A stretch of 64,000 nucleotides of DNA from Trichosphaerium sp. ATCC 40318 (taxonomy: Eukaryota > Protista > Tubulinea), in the NCBI GenBank assembly GCA_038496445.1, contig JALMLS010000196.1, positions 82,040 through 146,039 on the forward strand, read 5' to 3'. The notes beneath the pieces are model-generated. The model did no database searches. It saw only the letters and a program-made list of their open reading frames with translations, and was not told the origin of the DNA. A program made the position numbers and the translations under genes. Below, piece by piece: positions 4,931 to 55,336 of this stretch. The first letter of the stretch is position 1, and each line of letters opens with the position of its first letter.

Positions 4931-6163
4931 ATGAATAACAACAAATCAACATCTTCGTTATACTATGCTCAATGTGCTGTGGGAGGAGCCTTGGCATGTG
5001 GACTAACACACTCAGGTAATGAAGATAATTACTATTAGACAACAAATTGAACTGTTAGCAATTACACCACTTGATGTTCGCAAAGTGCGAAAGCAGATTA
5101 ATATGCCTTCAGCGCATTATCAGCTCCGGTCACTATGGAGACAGCACGGATTAAAAGCGTTAACTGTAGGTTGGAATCCAGCTCTTATAGGTTATGCACT
5201 CCAAGGTACTTTTTAATAACTTAGTGTCCTATGTATTCTAAAATTGGTAGGTACCGGGAAGTATGGTTTCTACGAGGCAAGTTGATGCTTTGGTTTTGTT
5301 TTTTTCTAATTTTCTCGGAAGGTGTTTACACGGATGTATGCCAATCAGGTTGGTCCCGATGCCTATAAGTATAAGGATCTTATCTACTTGGGTGCTAGCG
5401 CTTCTGCGGAATTAATAGCGGACGTAATGCTATGTCCTTGGGAATCTATTAAGGTATACAGACAGTAACTGAATTTATCAACTACCAAGCAATGTATAGG
5501 TACAAATGCAAAGTGCAAAACCTGCAAGTGTGAATCCAGGCATGATTTCAACAATGTCCAATATGTATGCCAGGAATGGTTTCGCAGGGTACGTTGTTTT
5601 GCTAACAACTTACAGTTTTGTTTTTAAAGAAAATTCCAGGTTCTTTTCTGCTCTTGGACCTCTGTGGGGTAGACAAGTACCTTACACTATGATGAAATTC
5701 TGGAGCTTTCAAAGGAGTGTAGACGCAATCTATAGTGTACTTCCAAAGAACAAACAGGATATGAGTGGTGCAGAAAAACTCTGTGTAAGTTTCGCAGGCG
5801 GATATTTGGCAGGAATATTTTGTACACTTGTATCTCAACCTCTGGATACTGTAGTTTCGGTCCTTAATGCAGAGAAATTAGCAGGAAAAAATACTTCTAC
5901 TTTACAAATAATGAAACGACTTGGACCAATAAAGATATGGTCTGGACTTGGAGAACGAAGCACGTGTTTACAATAGTATGCAATAGAAACTAACAAAAAA
6001 TAGTATTGATGATAGGTACACTCACGGCGCTACAATGGCTTATCTATGACTCATACAAGATAGCGGTTGGCCTGTAAGTAGCTCGCAACATTGTTCATAC
6101 ATTCACGTTTTTTTCTTACCTCAGTCTAGTGAAGTTACATCAGGGATTAAAAAACCAGAGTAA
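4931..6163 (+). CDS. Mitochondrial phosphate carrier (SLC25A3/Mir1/Pic2 family)
   Basis: GGALACGLTHS-AITPLDV, GWNPALIGYALQG, YGFYEVF, ASASAELIADVMLCPWESIK, PLWGRQVPYTMMKF, SFAGGYLAGIFCTLVSQPLDT and MIGTLTALQWLIYDSYK. Confidence 0.95.
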
Positions 6164-6390: not shown

Positions 6391-7273
6391 TTATAGCCTT
6401 CCTTTGTATTTACGAATACGATCAGCTGGTTTATAACTTATTCGTTGACCGATAACCGCATAGACCTTTCCGTTTACCCAAAATTGAAAGACACTACCGC
6501 GTTTTGGTACACCTAACAAAGACGTCATTACAAATCAAAAGTGTCACAAAAATCTTTCAAAAAAAGAGCTTACATTTTAGGCGGTTCTGTGCCGTCACAA
6601 TCTTAAATAGATTCTCTGTTTCTATTAGTATTATACCTTCTAATCCAATGAGCTGAGGGCTCCTGGCTTTATGAACTAAGAGAGATGAGACAGGGTTTTT
6701 CAAATTTTAAACTATTAAGGACGTACCACGCGTATGTGCACCGTGATAGTCAGATTTTAGAAAGCGTATAGCAAACTCGTCACTTTGATGTAAAATGTCA
6801 AAATTTCTCACATTAAATCGTTTGCAGCGTACCCTCTGCTACCTTCCATAACTTTGGAGATGTATTGCTTCCATAAATTATTCAAAGGAAGGTAATCTGA
6901 GTACCTAGTAGTTTGTTTGTAACAAGCGGCGTAAAAGACGTAAAAAATAGTTTCAATACGTACACCAACACTTTTGGTAGCGCAAAAAAGCCTTTTTGCT
7001 TCCTTTCACGCGCTGTAATTTGTTTTAATTTCCTTCTCTTCGCTGGCCTCCCATGGCGTATTCTAGGCTTCAGGACAACATCATTTATCTTTGGCATTAG
7101 CCGTTCGATTTCTTACCAACATTTTAACGTAAAGCACCGTTTTTTATCATACCTTGCTGTTTAGTATCAGTAGCAACCTGCGCTACGTAATTAGCCATCT
7201 CTTCATTATCATCTCTGGCATTTGGCCTTTTACCACCGTCGAGTGGTTTATACAAAGAACTAGATGCTGCCAT
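6391..7273 (-). CDS. POP4: RNase P/MRP subunit p29 (POP4/Rpp29)
   Basis: Spliced product includes YLPLNNLWKQYI, DYHGA, KARSPQLIGLEGIILIETENLFKIVT, VPKRGSVFQF and YKPADR. Confidence 0.85.
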
Positions 7274-7387: not shown

Positions 7388-10300
7388 TTACAAGATGGAT
7401 GTGGGCAACAATAGCCATAAAGATAGTATGAAGCAGTTCACGATTGATAGTAAGACGACAAGTGGATTTCCAGAGCATCTGTAAGGCCAAACAGGGAAGA
7501 ATTGTTCAGAGAACATACTCTCATGGCTGTAAAACAGTGCACCAAATCCTATCAATGATACGAACCAAAACAACTTGTACATAAAGGTAGGAACGCCCCT
7601 AGAAGAATTATTAGACCACTTAATAATAACCTCTAGGATAAGACATACCTGCAGAAACAGCAACACATGGAGTAAAGGTAGTAAGAAGTACGCATATACG
7701 CATTGAGGAATATTACTATCCACGCAGTTGTAAAATCTGCTTGCAACCAGCTCCAAGCCATTATAACTTTTATACTTTGTTAGTAAACATGTAATGATAA
7801 TTTTAAAGTTATTTAAAAACAGTTCACGTACCAAAAGTCACATGATACCACACGTGAGCAAATCCAGTAGACTCTCGCTTAAAAATACGGAAAAAAGTGT
7901 CAAGGCGCTCAAAGTGTTTGTACAAATAAAATTGGTAGAACCAAAACAACATGAGTTCTACAACAACAATAAGCCTCAATTATCCAAATTGCAAATTTTT
8001 TTCTTTTGTTCAAAAAACAAGCGTACCGCTTGGTGCCTCTTTGTAACAAAAAAATGATTCGACATCCTCAAAACCATTATTGAATTGCTCATAAGCGCTG
8101 TACGTTATACCACCACATATGATAGCAGACCAAAAAAAGTTGACAACATGATAAGGAAATCTAAAAATAATCATGCTGCTGGGACTCTTTCCTTTCCTAT
8201 ATTCATAATGTCAATGCATATATAACTTACTTTTATCATACCTGAATTGAGTAAATATCATCGCACATACAAGATACAAGAGCGTTGTGAAAACTGGGAA
8301 GTCCCAAGTCGTCATTGGCCAATCAGTTCCTTTAAATGTTGCCAAGTTATGTACCCACTTTATTGATACACCATACTCTTGGGCCAAGCCCTCAAGTTGC
8401 CACAAAATATCGCTTGTACCGGCACTTCCAGACATCAAGTCATAAACTAACTCAGAATTTGCCACTATTAAAAAGTTGTGAGTAACAAAACGCGTTTTAT
8501 ATGCACTGTAAGCGTTACCTGAATCGTATATACTTCTAAATGTATTCACAAAACCTTCTGCTGAAAAGAACTCATTTGCTTGATGTGTTAAATGAACACC
8601 AAATGTCTCCGCCTCACTGAGAATAACGTCCATGTCAAAATTTCCTGAACATAAAAAGTGAGCGACTGACCATACCACAAAAATGTATTTGTACGTGTAA
8701 AGGCGTAGTATCCAGCACCACAAATAATACCAACAAACATGAGTAGGAAAAAAATAAATGAGATCCAACCTACGTGACATACTTAGTTTACATTTAAACA
8801 ACCAAAACAGTTTTTTTTTGTTAACTCACCTCCTTGCTTTTCTATTTTAGTAGCTGCAATGAGTTTATCTGAACCACAAGACAATACTGTTGTGTCATCA
8901 GGAGAAATAGCGACACCTATTCTTCGTTATATTTTTTATATAGCTTTTGTTTAGTACCTGTAATTACAAAGCCATGAACGTCTTTGATCATAATTCTTTT
9001 CAAAGTTGTTGCATCAACCACTGCAATCTTTCCTTTGTTACTACCCAGAGCGACTAATCCGCCTGTACTACTCAAAGCTAGCGCTGTAATTTGCGTTTTC
9101 ATAACATTTTCTTTCTGTCAAACAATCAGCGAAAGTGTCAAACAACTAGCAAACTTACTTGTATTAACTGCCATGTACGCGTACTCCATTTACACAACAA
9201 TCCTTTCATTTTCCCCTGAAACCCTCTAGTATAAAGCACTCGGCCGCTGGGCGAAAATCTAGAGCCTTTAAGAACAACGTATCATCAAAGGCTCAAGCGT
9301 ACTTGCAACCCATAAATTTTAAACCAGGTTGAGATATCTCTGCAATGAGGTCTCCTGTGTGCATGTTCCATATTTTACAACACTGTTCAGTAACTGTAAC
9401 TGCCTTTGATTGAGTGAGCATTGTCTTTTTTAATAACTTTGTGACACTTACCGTCGTACACTCACGGTTTATTGTCAAATCTAAAATAGCATGCTCATGC
9501 GCTTCTATTTGATCTATTTGGTGCATCTCTGGTGTCCAAACACGCACGTGACCATCTTTACCAGCGGTGTAAATCTCATCACCATAACCTGTATTAACCC
9601 AAGCCACTGCTCGCTATTCAAATATTAGGATTAATCATTTTGACTCATTTTTTGTACTTGGCGACCCTTTGTCTCTCTGTCCATATGCGCTTTTACTTCC
9701 GCTTCTGTAAAGTCAAGAAATTGTCTATTGATTATTTAAATAACCTCAAAAGGCGCTATGTAAAATTACCTGTTCAGTTTTTCTATGTAAGCGCGTTTCA
9801 TGTTCTTTAAAAAATACGTTAAAAGTTAAAAAGCAAACAGTGAACAAACCTCATATTTTTCTCCTGACGCTTTAATATCAGTTTCTACTCTTGCAATAGC
9901 TTGTTTGAGTCTGTTGTTTTCTATGTTGTAAACACAACATGTCTCGTCAATACCAACAGCCACCTTCCTGCCCTACACAACGTTATTTAACGAGACGTAA
10001 CATATTTAACAATATATACCTCAGGATGCAATGCAAGATTCAATGGCTGACGTTGCCCAGTTTCGATTGATGACACTGTACGAATGCGACCATCCTGATA
10101 ATGGAGTATATCCTAGTATTGTTTTGATTAATAATTGATTGTAAAGTCGAAAAAAAAAAATTCTCTAAAAGGGAGTTTCAATTTTAGACTTTAAAACGTT
10201 TAAAATGATTACCACTGCGTTTGGGACGCCTGTACGAGATGCTCCGCCGCCTCTGGCGACAATAACGTGTCCAGTACTAGAACAGACTATTGAGTGACAA

Positions 10301-10653
10301 GGAGCCTGTACTTCCACTTGAGGCATCCATGAGCTGAAAAATAGGGGTTCCTTTACTTCATTTAGCGCCTGTCATACAAAATTCGCTAATGGTACCTCTT
10401 GTTCTGCTTTAGGGGCATTGGAGACGCCATTTTGAGGTTTTCTTTCAATTGAAGATGGCGCTTTAGGAAGAGAATTTGTTGTAAGCTGTCCATTAGCGCC
10501 AATTGGTGGAGCATTAAGCGTTAGAGGGGTTTGTTGTATTTTGCGAGCACCATTTGGCTGCAACGTGTTTTTTGCTTTTAACCTTTCGTTGTCACCACCA
10601 TTCGGTTCGCCAGTTTTTCTTTGACGACGCCTCTCTAGCGCTCTTTGGCGCAT
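7388..10653 (-). CDS. SEC12: Sec12/PREB-like WD40 GEF with TM anchor, fused in frame to a degenerate ELO (GNS1/SUR4) elongase-like domain
   Basis: K-loop-like RGGGASRTGVPNAV, WD40 repeats and TM WISFIFFLLMFVGIICGAGYYAF. After intron 8645-8694 the frame continues into WPMTTWDFPVFTTLLYL, FYLYKHFERLDTFF, FAHVWYHVT and LNAYMRTSYYLY. Confidence 0.75.
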
Positions 10654-14274: not shown

Positions 14275-14742
14275 CTAGGATAACTCTATCCCTTGTTCAA
14301 GAGCCCATTCTTCAAACACTTCACAGAACAGCTTATCGGCAGCTTCTTCAGAGGGATTCACCACCAAGAGTTGCTGGTCCATTGCCAAAGTGGTTGTATC
14401 GCTTGTAGCCACTGGTGATATGACGGTTGGCACCTTTGATGCGGTTTTAAGCACCTTTGAAGATTGCACTGTGTTTTCACACTGTGTCTTGCCCTGGATC
14501 TTCACTTCACGTCGGAAGATCTTCTTGTGTCGTTTGATTTCTGTTTTGGGCAGGTCATCGTGAATTACTTTTATCACTGTAGTCTCTTGGCTGTGACTGT
14601 TCGTGTGAGTGCAGACAGTGCCAGTGGTGTCTTCTCTGTAAATATTGTCGTTGTCGAGGGTGTGCTTCGGTTTTGATCGCTTACCGTTCTTCTTGAATAC
14701 GTTGCAGAATGTGTTGAAGCATTGTCTGATTGTGTCGAACAT
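14275..14742 (-). CDS. Intronless 155-aa orphan protein, copy A
   Basis: ATG-to-TAG ORF, near-identical to 15509-15976, with AATAAA downstream. Confidence 0.7.
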   Translation of the reverse strand: MFDTIRQCFNTFCNVFKKNGKRSKPKHTLDNDNIYREDTTGTVCTHTNSHSQETTVIKVIHDDLPKTEIKRHKKIFRREVKIQGKTQCENTVQSSKVLKTASKVPTVISPVATSDTTTLAMDQQLLVVNPSEEAADKLFCEVFEEWALEQGIELS

Positions 14743-15508: not shown

Positions 15509-15976
15509 ATGTTCGACACAATCAGACAACGCTTCAACACATTCTGCAACGTATTCAAGAAGAACGGAAAGCGATCTAAACCGAAGCACACCCTCGACAA
15601 CGACAATATTCTCCGAGAAGACACCAATGGCACTGCCTACGCCCACACAAACAGTCACAGCCAAGAGACTACAGTGATAAAAGTAATTCACGATGACCTG
15701 CCCAAAACAGAAATCAAACGACACAAGAAGATCTTCCGACGTGAAGTGAAGATCCAGGGCAAGACACAGTGTGAAAACACAGTGCAATCTTCAAAGGTGC
15801 TTAAAACCGCATCAAAGGTGCCAACCGTCATATCACCAGTGGCTACAAGCGATACAACCACTTTGGCAATGGACCAGCAACTCTTGGTGGTGAATCCCTC
15901 TGAAGAAGCTGCCGATAAGCTGTTCTGTGAAGTGTTTGAAGAATGGGCTCTTGAACAAGGGATAGAGTTATCCTAG
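15509..15976 (+). CDS. Intronless 155-aa orphan protein, copy B
   Basis: Inverted duplicate of copy A, with six amino-acid differences all in the first 45 residues. Confidence 0.7.
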   Translation: MFDTIRQRFNTFCNVFKKNGKRSKPKHTLDNDNILREDTNGTAYAHTNSHSQETTVIKVIHDDLPKTEIKRHKKIFRREVKIQGKTQCENTVQSSKVLKTASKVPTVISPVATSDTTTLAMDQQLLVVNPSEEAADKLFCEVFEEWALEQGIELS

Positions 15977-47103: not shown

Positions 47104-48324
47104 GTTGCGTTGGGTGAGGTGTAGATAAAGGTACAAGTACAACGTTTCACTTAAAACAAAAACAGTACATAATAGCTAAATTCACAAAAGTAGCAGGGAT
47201 CTCCAAAAATCCACAAAAAATTCTGAAAAATTATTTTGATTTTTCGCGATTGTGAAATTAAGTTTAATAAAGTTAACTTACCGCCAAAATTCTCTCATTG
47301 GTCCAACTCAGCCACATGTCACGTTGGGCAAGAGAAAAGCCCGGTTTATCACGCCAGTGTTTGTTAAAAAACCTTCCAATGTATCTGCAACTTGTTGCAC
47401 CAGATACTATCCGACACAACATTGTACAGATTGGTACTCAACCTTTGATGCGTTGTGGAAGGTACTTCAAACAAACCAAAGCGTTGGGAGGGCCTGACTT
47501 TAGAAACTTATCATACAATGGTTTGGGTGCATTAAAGTATTACCATTGCATCAAACCTCTTAACACTTGTGTAAAAATCGTCAATGAAAAAGGAAAATGC
47601 TCAAGTTGTCCAAAAAACTCAAAATGCACTGTAGAACGACACATCTATGTTACTTCAGACAATCCAGAGTTAGCTCACATCAATTCCTATGGAACTCACG
47701 CACCAGAGTTTTCCGCACGTAAAACTGTGGATAAAAAGTTCTTTTATTTTCAGGTACTTTATTTTATACAACATGCTACAAGAGTTAATGTTAACAATGC
47801 CTAGATACGCAAACATGCAAAGTACTACATATCCTCAGTCGCCATCGATCCATAATGTTGTTGGCCATGACCATTTTCGAAAACATGTGCTATAAAAGGT
47901 AAAACATATAAATTAATTAATAACTATTCATGATGGATAGATATGACAAAATAGATAAATGCATTGGATTTCTTGAGCAAAATGGCATACATGTATATGT
48001 ATAAGTGAACCATAGGTAGTCATGTAACTGCAGCCTCCAAGCAAAGATGTATCCAATTTTTCACTAAAAAAATCCCATTGTAAAAATCAAAAAAAATCCA
48101 AAAATCAAAGAATGGCTCACCAAATCGACATATACTGCTATAAAATCCTACAAACCACCAACAATTGGGTAATTTATGCCAGTGTATAAGGTATAAAAAA
48201 CGAAACTGGCTTAAGCGATATGATAAGGTATGTGGTAATGTATGATTCAAATTAAATTCCTAAGATTATTTTATATCTCATAGTCATGAATAGATATGAA
48301 AATAAACAATATCTCATTATGTTG

Positions 48325-53400: not shown

Positions 53401-54625
53401 TTAGGTACATAGGTTTTTCTAGCGAACAATATCCACATGCTATTATTAAAGGTGAAAAAACCAATGGTACAGGTTAAAGTGCGTTAATCCAAAAAGTAAC
53501 AGAGAACGCATTTTAGGTGGTTTGGAAAATCACTTAAACATAAATATCTCTTACTTATCTGTTTTAGGATGATTAAAGCATTGCAACAGCCTTATTACAC
53601 CATTAAAGAATGTATTTAAAGCATTAACTCCAAGTACGTTGTTTTTAAAGCTTATTTCCACTTAATTTATCAAAAAACCCTACGCGTTCTTAATTTAGCG
53701 TTTACAAATGCATTAATTATTGTTCAGGCTCTCAAAACCAAATGCGATCAAATTACTTCTTTCATTTATGAAGACACAATGTATTTAACTTGTACATATT
53801 ATTTAGGATGTTTGTATTTTGTAATGATCAATAAATAAAATGACTTTGCATTAAATCTGAACCAAAGTATCAGATAATATTTTGTGTAATTTATAAAGTA
53901 TTTTTTATTGAAATCTACAAAAAATACATTAAGAAATGCTATAAAGAATACATAGAGAATTCTATATAAAATACATACGCAATTCCAAAAGTAATACTCT
54001 AAGAATTCTATGAGTAATACTTACGGAATTTCATATAAATTCAATGGGAATTAAGGAAGAGTTTTTCCGTCTACTTTTCCCATAGGAAAACAGGGTGGAT
54101 TACTTAAAAATTCCCATTTCTATTTTACTACTGATCTAGGCATTGTTAACATTAACTCTTGTAGCATGTTGTATAAAATAAAGTACCTGAAAATAAAAGA
54201 ACTTTTTATCCACAGTTTTACGCGCGGAAAACTCTGGTGTGTGAGTTCCATAGGAATTGATGTGAGCTAACTCTGGATTGTCTGAAGTAACATAGATGTG
54301 TCGTTCTACAGTGCATTTCGAGTTTTTTGGACAACTTGAGCATTTTCCTTTTTCATTGACGATTTTTACACAAGTGTTAAGAGGTTTGATGCAATGGTAA
54401 TACTTTAATGCACCCAAACCATTGTATGATAAGTTTCTAAAGTCAGGCCCTCCCAACGCTTTGGTTTGTTTGAAGTACCTTCCACAACGCATCAAAGGTT
54501 GAGTACCAATCTTTACAATGTTGTGTCGGATAGTATCTGGTGCAACAAGTTGCAGATACATTGGAAGGTTTTTTAACAAACACTGGCGTGATAAACCGGG
54601 CTTTTCTCTTGCCCAACGTGACATG
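50412..54625 (-). pseudogene. MULE transposase pseudogene (WRKY/GCM1-like finger, DDE core, SWIM finger)
   Basis: YYHC...CTVERHIYVTSDNPELAHINSYGTH (C-x23-H); LIGWDEEYKSNKH (D1); VMCDRC..VVLCQWH (D2, CxxH); NTNNKTE (E); CSCHQYHLYGKPCKHIFAV (SWIM). In-frame stops at 52944-52946 and 52531-52533, a frameshift near 52270 and a 1-kb insertion. Confidence 0.9.
53127..54133. mobile_element. Nested non-autonomous TIR element (1007 bp) with AT target duplication
   Basis: Termini cagtggtaaaatgaaaacgggatttt and (rc) cagtagtaaaatagaaatgggaattt; AT on both sides; empty site ctagATacgc at 47801-47810; contains TTAGGG repeats at ~53325-53360. Confidence 0.85.
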
Positions 54626-55336
54626 TGGCTGAGTTGGACCAATGAGAGAATTTTGGCGGTAAGTTAACTTTATTAAACTTAATTTCACAATCGCGAAAAA
54701 TCAAAATAATTTTTCAGAATTTTTTGTGGATTTTTGGAGATCCCTGCAAATACCTTGTTTAGGACTCCTGCCGATAACAGTATTGAAGGAAGAGCGTGAA
54801 AGAGTTTCGAATAATCTAGCCATTGTCGTTTAAAGAAGTGCGAAGCTCGGAAAGATAGAATTGTTACTAAAAAAGGCGGAAAACTGGCCTGTTGAAACTA
54901 CACTGTTTTGGAATTTAGCAAAACATAACACCTTTTAATAAACATCAAAATGACTTTAGAAGCATTTCCGGAGCGAACGGTTCAAAAATGACAAAAAAGG
55001 AAAGTGCGCGTACAAACTGACAGACTTTGTGGCTATTTTAAAATAATGCTCAAAACCAGATCAAGCACTTCTTTTATAACTTTAAATATGGTGATACAGC
55101 GCCTCAAGGCTAAGAAAAGCCAAACTGCGTGCAACATGAGAAAAATAATAGACATCAGAAAAAACTTCTTTATTTTATACTGTCCTTTGTGACATTACAA
55201 TACGCGATAAAGATTGATGCCCAGTACTGTAAAGAGCAAATAGGGGAAAATAGACAGAAAAACAGACAGAAAACCGCGAGTTTTCAACAGTAGGGAGAAA
55301 CTAACAAACCAATTAAAAATATCTTAGAAACGCATC

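Follow-up and report, generated by a model that had tools for sequence, protein, structure and literature searches.

Probably two genes, not one fusion: Sec12-type and degenerate ELO-like reading frames on a common spliced transcript in Trichosphaerium sp. ATCC 40318

The minus strand of positions 10653-7388 in a 64,000-nucleotide (nt) stretch of Trichosphaerium sp. ATCC 40318 DNA (contig JALMLS010000196.1, positions 82,040 to 146,039, here called the window) raises the question of whether a Sec12-type protein and an ELO-like, or elongase-like, domain are joined there in one polypeptide or are encoded side by side. An initial annotation, made from the sequence, had read a Sec12-type K-loop, WD40 repeats and a transmembrane (TM) anchor as continuing in frame, through one intron and a linker of ~90 amino acids (aa), into a pseudo-elongase, and had proposed the product as a possible lipid-sensing initiator of COPII. 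Spliced RNA gives a different arrangement, in which two open reading frames (ORFs) lie head to tail on the same strand and on a common transcript, with no fusion protein encoded in this RNA. The preferred reading, to which a probability of roughly 0.65 is assigned, is that a Sec12-type gene and a short, catalytically dead ELO-family gene are separate, have transcribed exons in common, and are divided by a stop-to-start gap of 7 nt.

Positions 10653-7388 of the minus strand form an intron-rich eukaryotic coding region with a G+C content of ~38%. Its 15 introns are all of the GT..AG type and measure 41-100 nt, except for one of 236 nt; donors beginning GTA are found in 13 of the 15. The motifs on which the initial annotation was built, i.e. 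GGGASRTGVPN, WD40-type exons, a TM anchor, KHFERLDT, HVWYH and NAYMRTSYYLY, are all present on this strand as described. Two public sequencing runs contain this stretch, one from a related organism (X1) and one identical to the window (X2). Three spliced X2 contigs jointly span 8799 to past 7388 with zero mismatches to the window, and skip the 50-nt, 54-nt and 47-nt introns as well as the four introns of the ELO-like ORF (Table 1), all with GT..AG ends. The depths of the X2 contigs reproduce the depth table exactly, the introns being without any X2 contig, and the spliced junction 8377|8329, across the 47-nt intron, has a depth of 9.5. The 50-nt intron reported in the initial annotation is thus confirmed. 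The ~90-aa linker is not the single exon it was taken for, as the RNA removes both the 54-nt and the 47-nt introns from it, and the intron on the ELO side, formerly read as 8241-8161, is 8241-8197 in the RNA (45 nt, acceptor at 8197).

Removal of the 47-nt intron shifts the frame, and the frame of the TM exon then runs into a TGA (8325-8323) two codons past 8377|8329. The ELO frame is +1 relative to the Sec12 frame; it is shut 25 codons upstream with no ATG between, and its first Met (8315-8313) lies 7 nt past the Sec12 TGA. Translation of the X2 splice pattern yields no uninterrupted Sec12-ELO frame in the mature messenger RNA (mRNA). The use of UGA as a sense codon was considered and rejected, as the Sec12 frame read onward soon meets another stop. 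The ELO-like part has a start of its own, an outcome which the initial annotation had foreseen as contrary to fusion; it lies at MTTWDF (8315) and not at MDVILSE, the example named there. Gene 1, of Sec12/PREB type, comprises K-loop, predicted WD40 propeller, single membrane anchor and a luminal tail of 73 aa, ends at the above TGA, and encodes 410 aa from ATG 10326 or ~504 aa when exon 10653-10396 is included. Gene 2, the ELO-like gene, encodes 232 aa from ATG 8315-8313 to TAA 7390-7388.

A single Sec12-linker-ELO protein, made constitutively with 8644-8242 as one coding exon, as first proposed, has in its favour that the genomic ORF is continuous and that the topology fits; the spliced RNA takes 54 and 47 nt out of that exon and alters the frame, and this model is highly improbable. 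Because the spliced RNA contradicts a single polypeptide, the proposed lipid-sensing COPII mechanism loses its physical basis; what remains of it is the tight linkage and co-transcription of the two genes. No Sec12-ELO fusion came to light in a limited search of the literature.

The imitation of a fusion by the genomic sequence has a simple source. By coincidence, three short introns contain no stop in one frame, which leaves a continuous ORF of 196 aa (8801-8211), the second longest of the 64-kb window, and its length probably explains why it was noticed. Read in the frame of the upstream exon, only four of the 15 introns lack a stop, and open intron-frame combinations number 11 of 45. The exons flanking the 54-nt and 47-nt introns share one genomic frame, and both introns are stop-free in it. 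The combined chance of that open frame is, by our own estimate, ~2-3%, which is uncommon, though not remarkable for a pattern spotted post hoc.

The same open frame speaks for a conditional form of fusion, whereby most transcripts splice 8376-8330 and a regulated minor isoform either retains the 47 nt or uses a 42-nt in-frame intron from GT 8371. The product would be a Sec12-tail-ELO polypeptide of ~660 aa (the retained-intron model is a single 661-aa ORF), and its topology would fit, since Sec12 ends and ELO begins on the luminal side. The stop-free 54-nt intron next to it is in addition a multiple of three in length, and no AUG precedes 8315 in the ELO frame, whose protein begins almost at TM1. 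Set against this, intron 8376-8330 is uncovered by X2 contigs and the spliced junction has the above depth of 9.5, the alternative donor GTGTAT departs from the GTA start of most donors at the locus, and the open frame is within reach of chance. Such an isoform is unlikely. Distinctly unlikely is the broader proposal of one expression unit that can be switched to a single polypeptide tethering a lipid- or acyl-coenzyme A (acyl-CoA)-binding barrel to the COPII initiator, and equally so, when taken jointly with it, are the candidate switches, namely retention of the 47 nt, the 42-nt intron from GT 8371, or a +1 frameshift over AAC-UGA-U leading into ...DWPM...; none of the three is supported by the data.

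The separate identity of each gene can be garnered from its own exons. For the first gene, the K-loop GGGASRTGVPN (10251-10219), of the GGGxxxxGxxN type, lies at the start of the propeller. The 38-aa exon that carries it has human PREB (5tf2) as its top match in the PDB (phmmer, E 0.0089), the alignment covering the K-loop itself (PREB GGGGAAKTGIKN). In PDB sequence searches exon 9613-9452 matches PREB residues 187-223 (E 6.6e-5) and exon 9114-8958 matches residues 321-365, the latter also weakly matching yeast Sec12 (4h5i, E 5.3). The PREB matches are collinear over the three exons (39-63, 187-223, 321-365), in agreement with the Sec12 module of the initial annotation, and two exons weakly match generic WD40/beta-propeller families of Pfam. 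On these similarities the first gene is accepted as a putative Sec12/PREB-type Sar1 exchange factor. Metagenome contigs queried with a Sec12 exon gave three generic WD40 matches at 35% identity.

The predicted membrane anchor is a hydrophobic stretch of 23 residues, in frame with the propeller via a GT..AG intron whose junction would be 8830|8769. The TM exon must be spliced onto 8830, because the hydrophobic run starts 9 residues before the exon's sole Met. A small separate gene starting from that internal Met was considered and rejected, as the hydrophobic run would then be reduced to just 14 residues. Beyond the anchor, the 73-aa luminal tail is open across two spliced junctions, and on this basis it is coding. 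The tail has no Pfam family in a Pfam scan, and when the 133-aa 'linker' piece was searched in a collection of 1.84 billion representatives, three spurious repeat proteins were the sole matches. Junction 9303|9258 is present in X1 RNA, which places the intron at 9302-9259 and not at the boundary guessed from ORFs; the remaining WD40-exon junctions are drawn from GT..AG and reading frame. All differences from X1 within the Sec12 exons (3/3) are synonymous, which is counted here as probable selection on Sec12 and in favour of the two-gene reading.

The N-terminal portion of the gene is modelled with less certainty. Exon 10653-10396 joins via a 45-nt intron (10395-10351), the sole GT..AG combination with an open frame, and the frame and splice sites together make a basic extension of 86 aa at the Sec12 N-terminus possible. 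Between matched exons the exon model is ~40-80 aa short of PREB, which suggests that an exon is perhaps missing. Intron 9849-9614, at 236 nt, exceeds the other 14 by far in length, and an X1 contig stops exactly at 9613. A small exon may be hidden in this intron, as the PREB offsets suggest a deficit of ~40 residues in the model from the K-loop exon to exon 9613-9452. Another Sec12 intron, 9404-9451 on the minus strand, is 48 nt in length, a multiple of three, and is stop-free in frame; its retention would add 16 propeller residues. Like Sec12/PREB, the protein has its K-loop close to the N-terminus of a predicted WD40 propeller and a single C-terminal anchor. Unlike Sec12/PREB, it has a tail without detectable relative, a possible 86-aa basic extension, and a stop 7 nt before the next ORF. 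The luminal tail of yeast Sec12 comprises some tens of residues.

For the second gene, exon 7957-7832 (41 aa) matches the Pfam ELO family, PF01151, at 26.8 bits (E 4.5e-6; the whole-protein cut-off is 27) over profile positions 86-124 of 242, and in the ESM Atlas ELO accounts for 73 of the 100 nearest clusters of this exon. The other ELO-like exons, taken singly, have no Pfam match, being too short or too divergent, and the ELO exons have no ELOVL7 match among PDB sequences. Hydropathy of the 232-aa ORF shows five clear segments and, in addition, weaker ones, at a spacing that fits an ELO protein with seven TM segments. Consistent with the ELO module of the initial annotation, the Pfam and Atlas matches point to a protein of the ELO/ELOVL family, for which seven TM segments are predicted. 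No stop interrupts the 232 codons of the ORF, which span four spliced junctions; at ~7% stop codons the probability of such openness by chance is ~5e-8 by the present estimate, and the ORF is taken as coding.

The signature boxes of the family are unevenly kept. KxxExxDT is retained as KHFERLDT, including Lys and Asp. The His box reads HVWYH, with first and last His kept and the second His replaced by Tyr. In the third box, NAYMRTSYYLYS, Asn is kept and His is replaced by Arg. TxxQxxQ is found nowhere in the 232-aa ORF. The placing of the Arg and of the Gln box follows motif spacing and not a computed alignment. According to the ELOVL7 structure paper, the acyl-imidazole through which elongation proceeds is formed on H150, which is the second His of HxxHH and the acyl-accepting nucleophile. 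ELOVL7 reads HVFHH at the equivalent place. The structure paper lists K124, D130, H150, H151, N177, H181 and Q211 as essential, with ~10% activity for a Q214 mutant, and H181 as essential in both ELOVL7 and EloA. With the nucleophilic His, the second catalytic His and the Gln box lost, the ELO-like protein almost certainly cannot condense acyl-CoA with malonyl-CoA. Pseudo-elongase is thus a fair description, and the product is probably a non-catalytic membrane protein of the endoplasmic reticulum (ER).

The ELO-like protein shares with ELO/ELOVL proteins the KxxExxDT box, the spacing of the boxes and the positions of the hydrophobic segments. It differs from them in having HVWYH for HVFHH, Arg in place of H181 and no TxxQxxQ, and in being only 232 aa in length and beginning almost at TM1. 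TMEM120A/TACAN is a membrane protein that binds CoA and has a barrel like that of ELOVL; elongase activity is not demonstrated for it. It offers a precedent in that an ELOVL-type barrel binds CoA without demonstrated elongation, and a dead ELO protein could act likewise. The present protein possibly still binds acyl-CoA. TMEM120A differs in keeping WVFHH and in having no ELO sequence similarity; the present protein is assigned to the ELO family by its sequence and no longer has the HH pair. A non-catalytic ELO-fold protein of this kind was not found described in a limited search of the literature.

An additional observation on this gene comes from X1, of which a contig (7617-7767) runs unspliced from exon 7766-7649 for 32 nt into intron 7648-7599, reflecting either intron retention or DNA in the library.

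Information about how the two genes are expressed comes from two of the X2 contigs. Contig 5 begins in the Sec12 tail exon at 8549 and, crossing both the stop and the ELO start, reaches 7846. Contig 6 extends from 8529 up to 8799, where it passes into a loose end of 20 letters; in reverse complement these correspond to a SMART-type template-switch oligo that ends in GGGG. Because of this tag, and with no X2 coverage over 8805-10653, 8799 is read as the 5' end of a complementary DNA (cDNA). This position falls within Sec12 intron 9 (8829-8770), 30 nt ahead of the TM exon. Either at least one ELO-carrying RNA starts inside the Sec12 gene, or the cDNA is a truncated one from a precursor retaining intron 9. 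Of the Sec12 coding exons, the X2 contigs join the last three, correctly spliced, to all ELO exons. Since the Sec12 stop sits in ELO exon 1, the Sec12 mRNA extends at least that far, and since an RNA carrying the ELO ORF begins at or upstream of 8799, the genes overlap in transcription or form a dicistronic unit. Sec12 and ELO thus appear to share a transcription unit.

Several points weigh against the reading as two separate, translated genes. Its RNA basis is one small run, X2 (18 Mb), with three contigs at a k-mer depth of 5-10, and assembly into contigs loses the less common isoforms and is no proof of single molecules. Neither the WD40-to-TM junction nor a full Sec12 ORF together with ELO is seen on RNA. 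The chance of ~0.02-0.03 for stop-free introns that share a frame makes a retained-intron fusion at least possible. By extrapolation from the exon match, the first Met of the ELO ORF corresponds to a point ~3 residues into the PF01151 profile, and ordinary elongases have a longer N-terminus. Finally, seven AUGs lie in the leader from 8799, and the ELO AUG is preceded by C at -3; with those upstream AUGs and this poor context, ordinary scanning would seldom arrive at it.

The leader from 8799 measures 333 nt, and one of its AUGs opens a Sec12-frame ORF of 88 codons, which stops 7 nt short of the ELO AUG. As a guess, the ELO ORF might be translated by reinitiation after this ORF. Alternatively it could be served by a shorter mRNA, arising from a nearer start site or from trans-splicing at acceptor 8329. 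A functional link between ER exit and lipids, if there is any, would come from co-expression and not from a covalent tether.

The difficulty of reaching the ELO AUG also speaks for a different view, that the ELO-like ORF goes untranslated and is a recently inactivated elongase surviving as spliced 3' untranslated region of the Sec12 mRNA. Of the four signature boxes of the ELO family only one is intact, no in-frame AUG has good context, and seven AUGs lie upstream in the observed RNA. The single difference from X1 in the ELO ORF (position 7701, Ala146 to Thr, within the third box) is non-synonymous, although one substitution is no statistic. The last, C-terminal ELO exon, searched as a region of a stop-free ORF, has no relative in 5.8 billion clusters, and the same exon found none among metagenome contigs. 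A relic of this kind is hard to reconcile with 232 codons free of stop or frameshift and four introns correctly spliced, in a protein that retains KxxExxDT as well as the flanking Asn and His and the way its hydrophobic segments are spaced. It is very unlikely, and a translated second gene is preferred.

Loci with nuclear polycistronic mRNAs have been documented in green algae (PMC7896298, PMC11291117). As in the algal dicistronic mRNAs, a spliced RNA here links two ORFs of unrelated proteins, set only a very short distance apart. In the green-algal studies the downstream ORF is reportedly reached by leaky scanning past a short, AUG-poor upstream ORF. The upstream ORF of the present locus differs in being long and AUG-rich, so leaky scanning does not fit.

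The coordinates of the features are collected in Table 1.

Table 1. Features of the Sec12-type and ELO-like genes on the minus strand (window positions)
Feature	Position	Strand	Evidence
Candidate N-terminal exon of the Sec12-like gene, 86 aa, basic, low-complexity, from ATG 10653	10396..10653	-	inferred
Sec12 exon with alternative start (ATG 10326) and K-loop	10213..10350	-	motif and phmmer against PDB
Sec12 WD40 beta-propeller exons	10112-10020, 9972-9850, 9613-9452, 9403-9303, 9258-9159, 9114-8958, 8916-8830	-	
Transmembrane-anchor exon	8695..8769	-	hydrophobic stretch 8767-8699
cDNA 5' end within Sec12 intron 8829-8770	8799	-	X2 loose end
50-nt intron	8645..8694	-	joint in X2 contig 6
Sec12 luminal-tail exons 8644-8519 and 8464-8377, with 54-nt intron 8518-8465 between	8377..8644	-	X2 joints
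47-nt intron, taken as coding in the initial annotation	8330..8376	-	skipped by X2 contig 5, zero mismatches
TGA, stop of the Sec12 ORF in spliced RNA	8323..8325	-	translation
ELO-like ORF exons	8315-8242, 8196-8027, 7957-7832, 7766-7649, 7598-7388	-	
ELO-like ORF introns	8241-8197, 8026-7958, 7831-7767, 7648-7599	-	all four spliced in X2
KHFERLDT	7919-7896	-	
Degenerate His box HVWYH	7856-7842	-	
Degenerate NxxxHxxMYxYY box NAYMRTSYYLYS (NAYMRTSYYLY)	7669..7704	-	Arg at expected catalytic His

The surroundings of the gene pair can be described briefly. Next on the same strand is a gene for the RNase P/MRP subunit p29 (6391-7273), with Pfam PF01868 matches on two exons. Its likely ATG, 7273, lies 112 nt past the ELO stop, from which the genome is seen to be very compact, a point in favour of the two-gene reading. 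A mitochondrial carrier exon is located at 5506-5976 (+), its nearest Atlas cluster scoring 0.95 with mostly Rotifera records. Two pairs of near-identical ORFs lie in inverted orientation, one of 155 aa (14275-14742 on the minus strand and 15509-15976 on the plus strand) and one of 168 aa (47298-47804 on the plus strand and 54136-54642 on the minus strand); both pairs are local inverted duplications. Neither Rfam nor tRNA scanning of the window gave a match.

In this genome, dense in introns of 41-69 nt, many of which lack stops, long open frames across neighbouring genes can pose as domain fusions, and RNA is needed before such fusions are credited. The loss of the acyl-accepting His in conjunction with an intact ORF makes the ELO-like product a candidate non-catalytic ELO-fold protein. 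If both ORFs are translated from the common RNA, the locus would be an unusual nuclear dicistronic pair, in which a protein of ER export is coupled with a lipid-related one.

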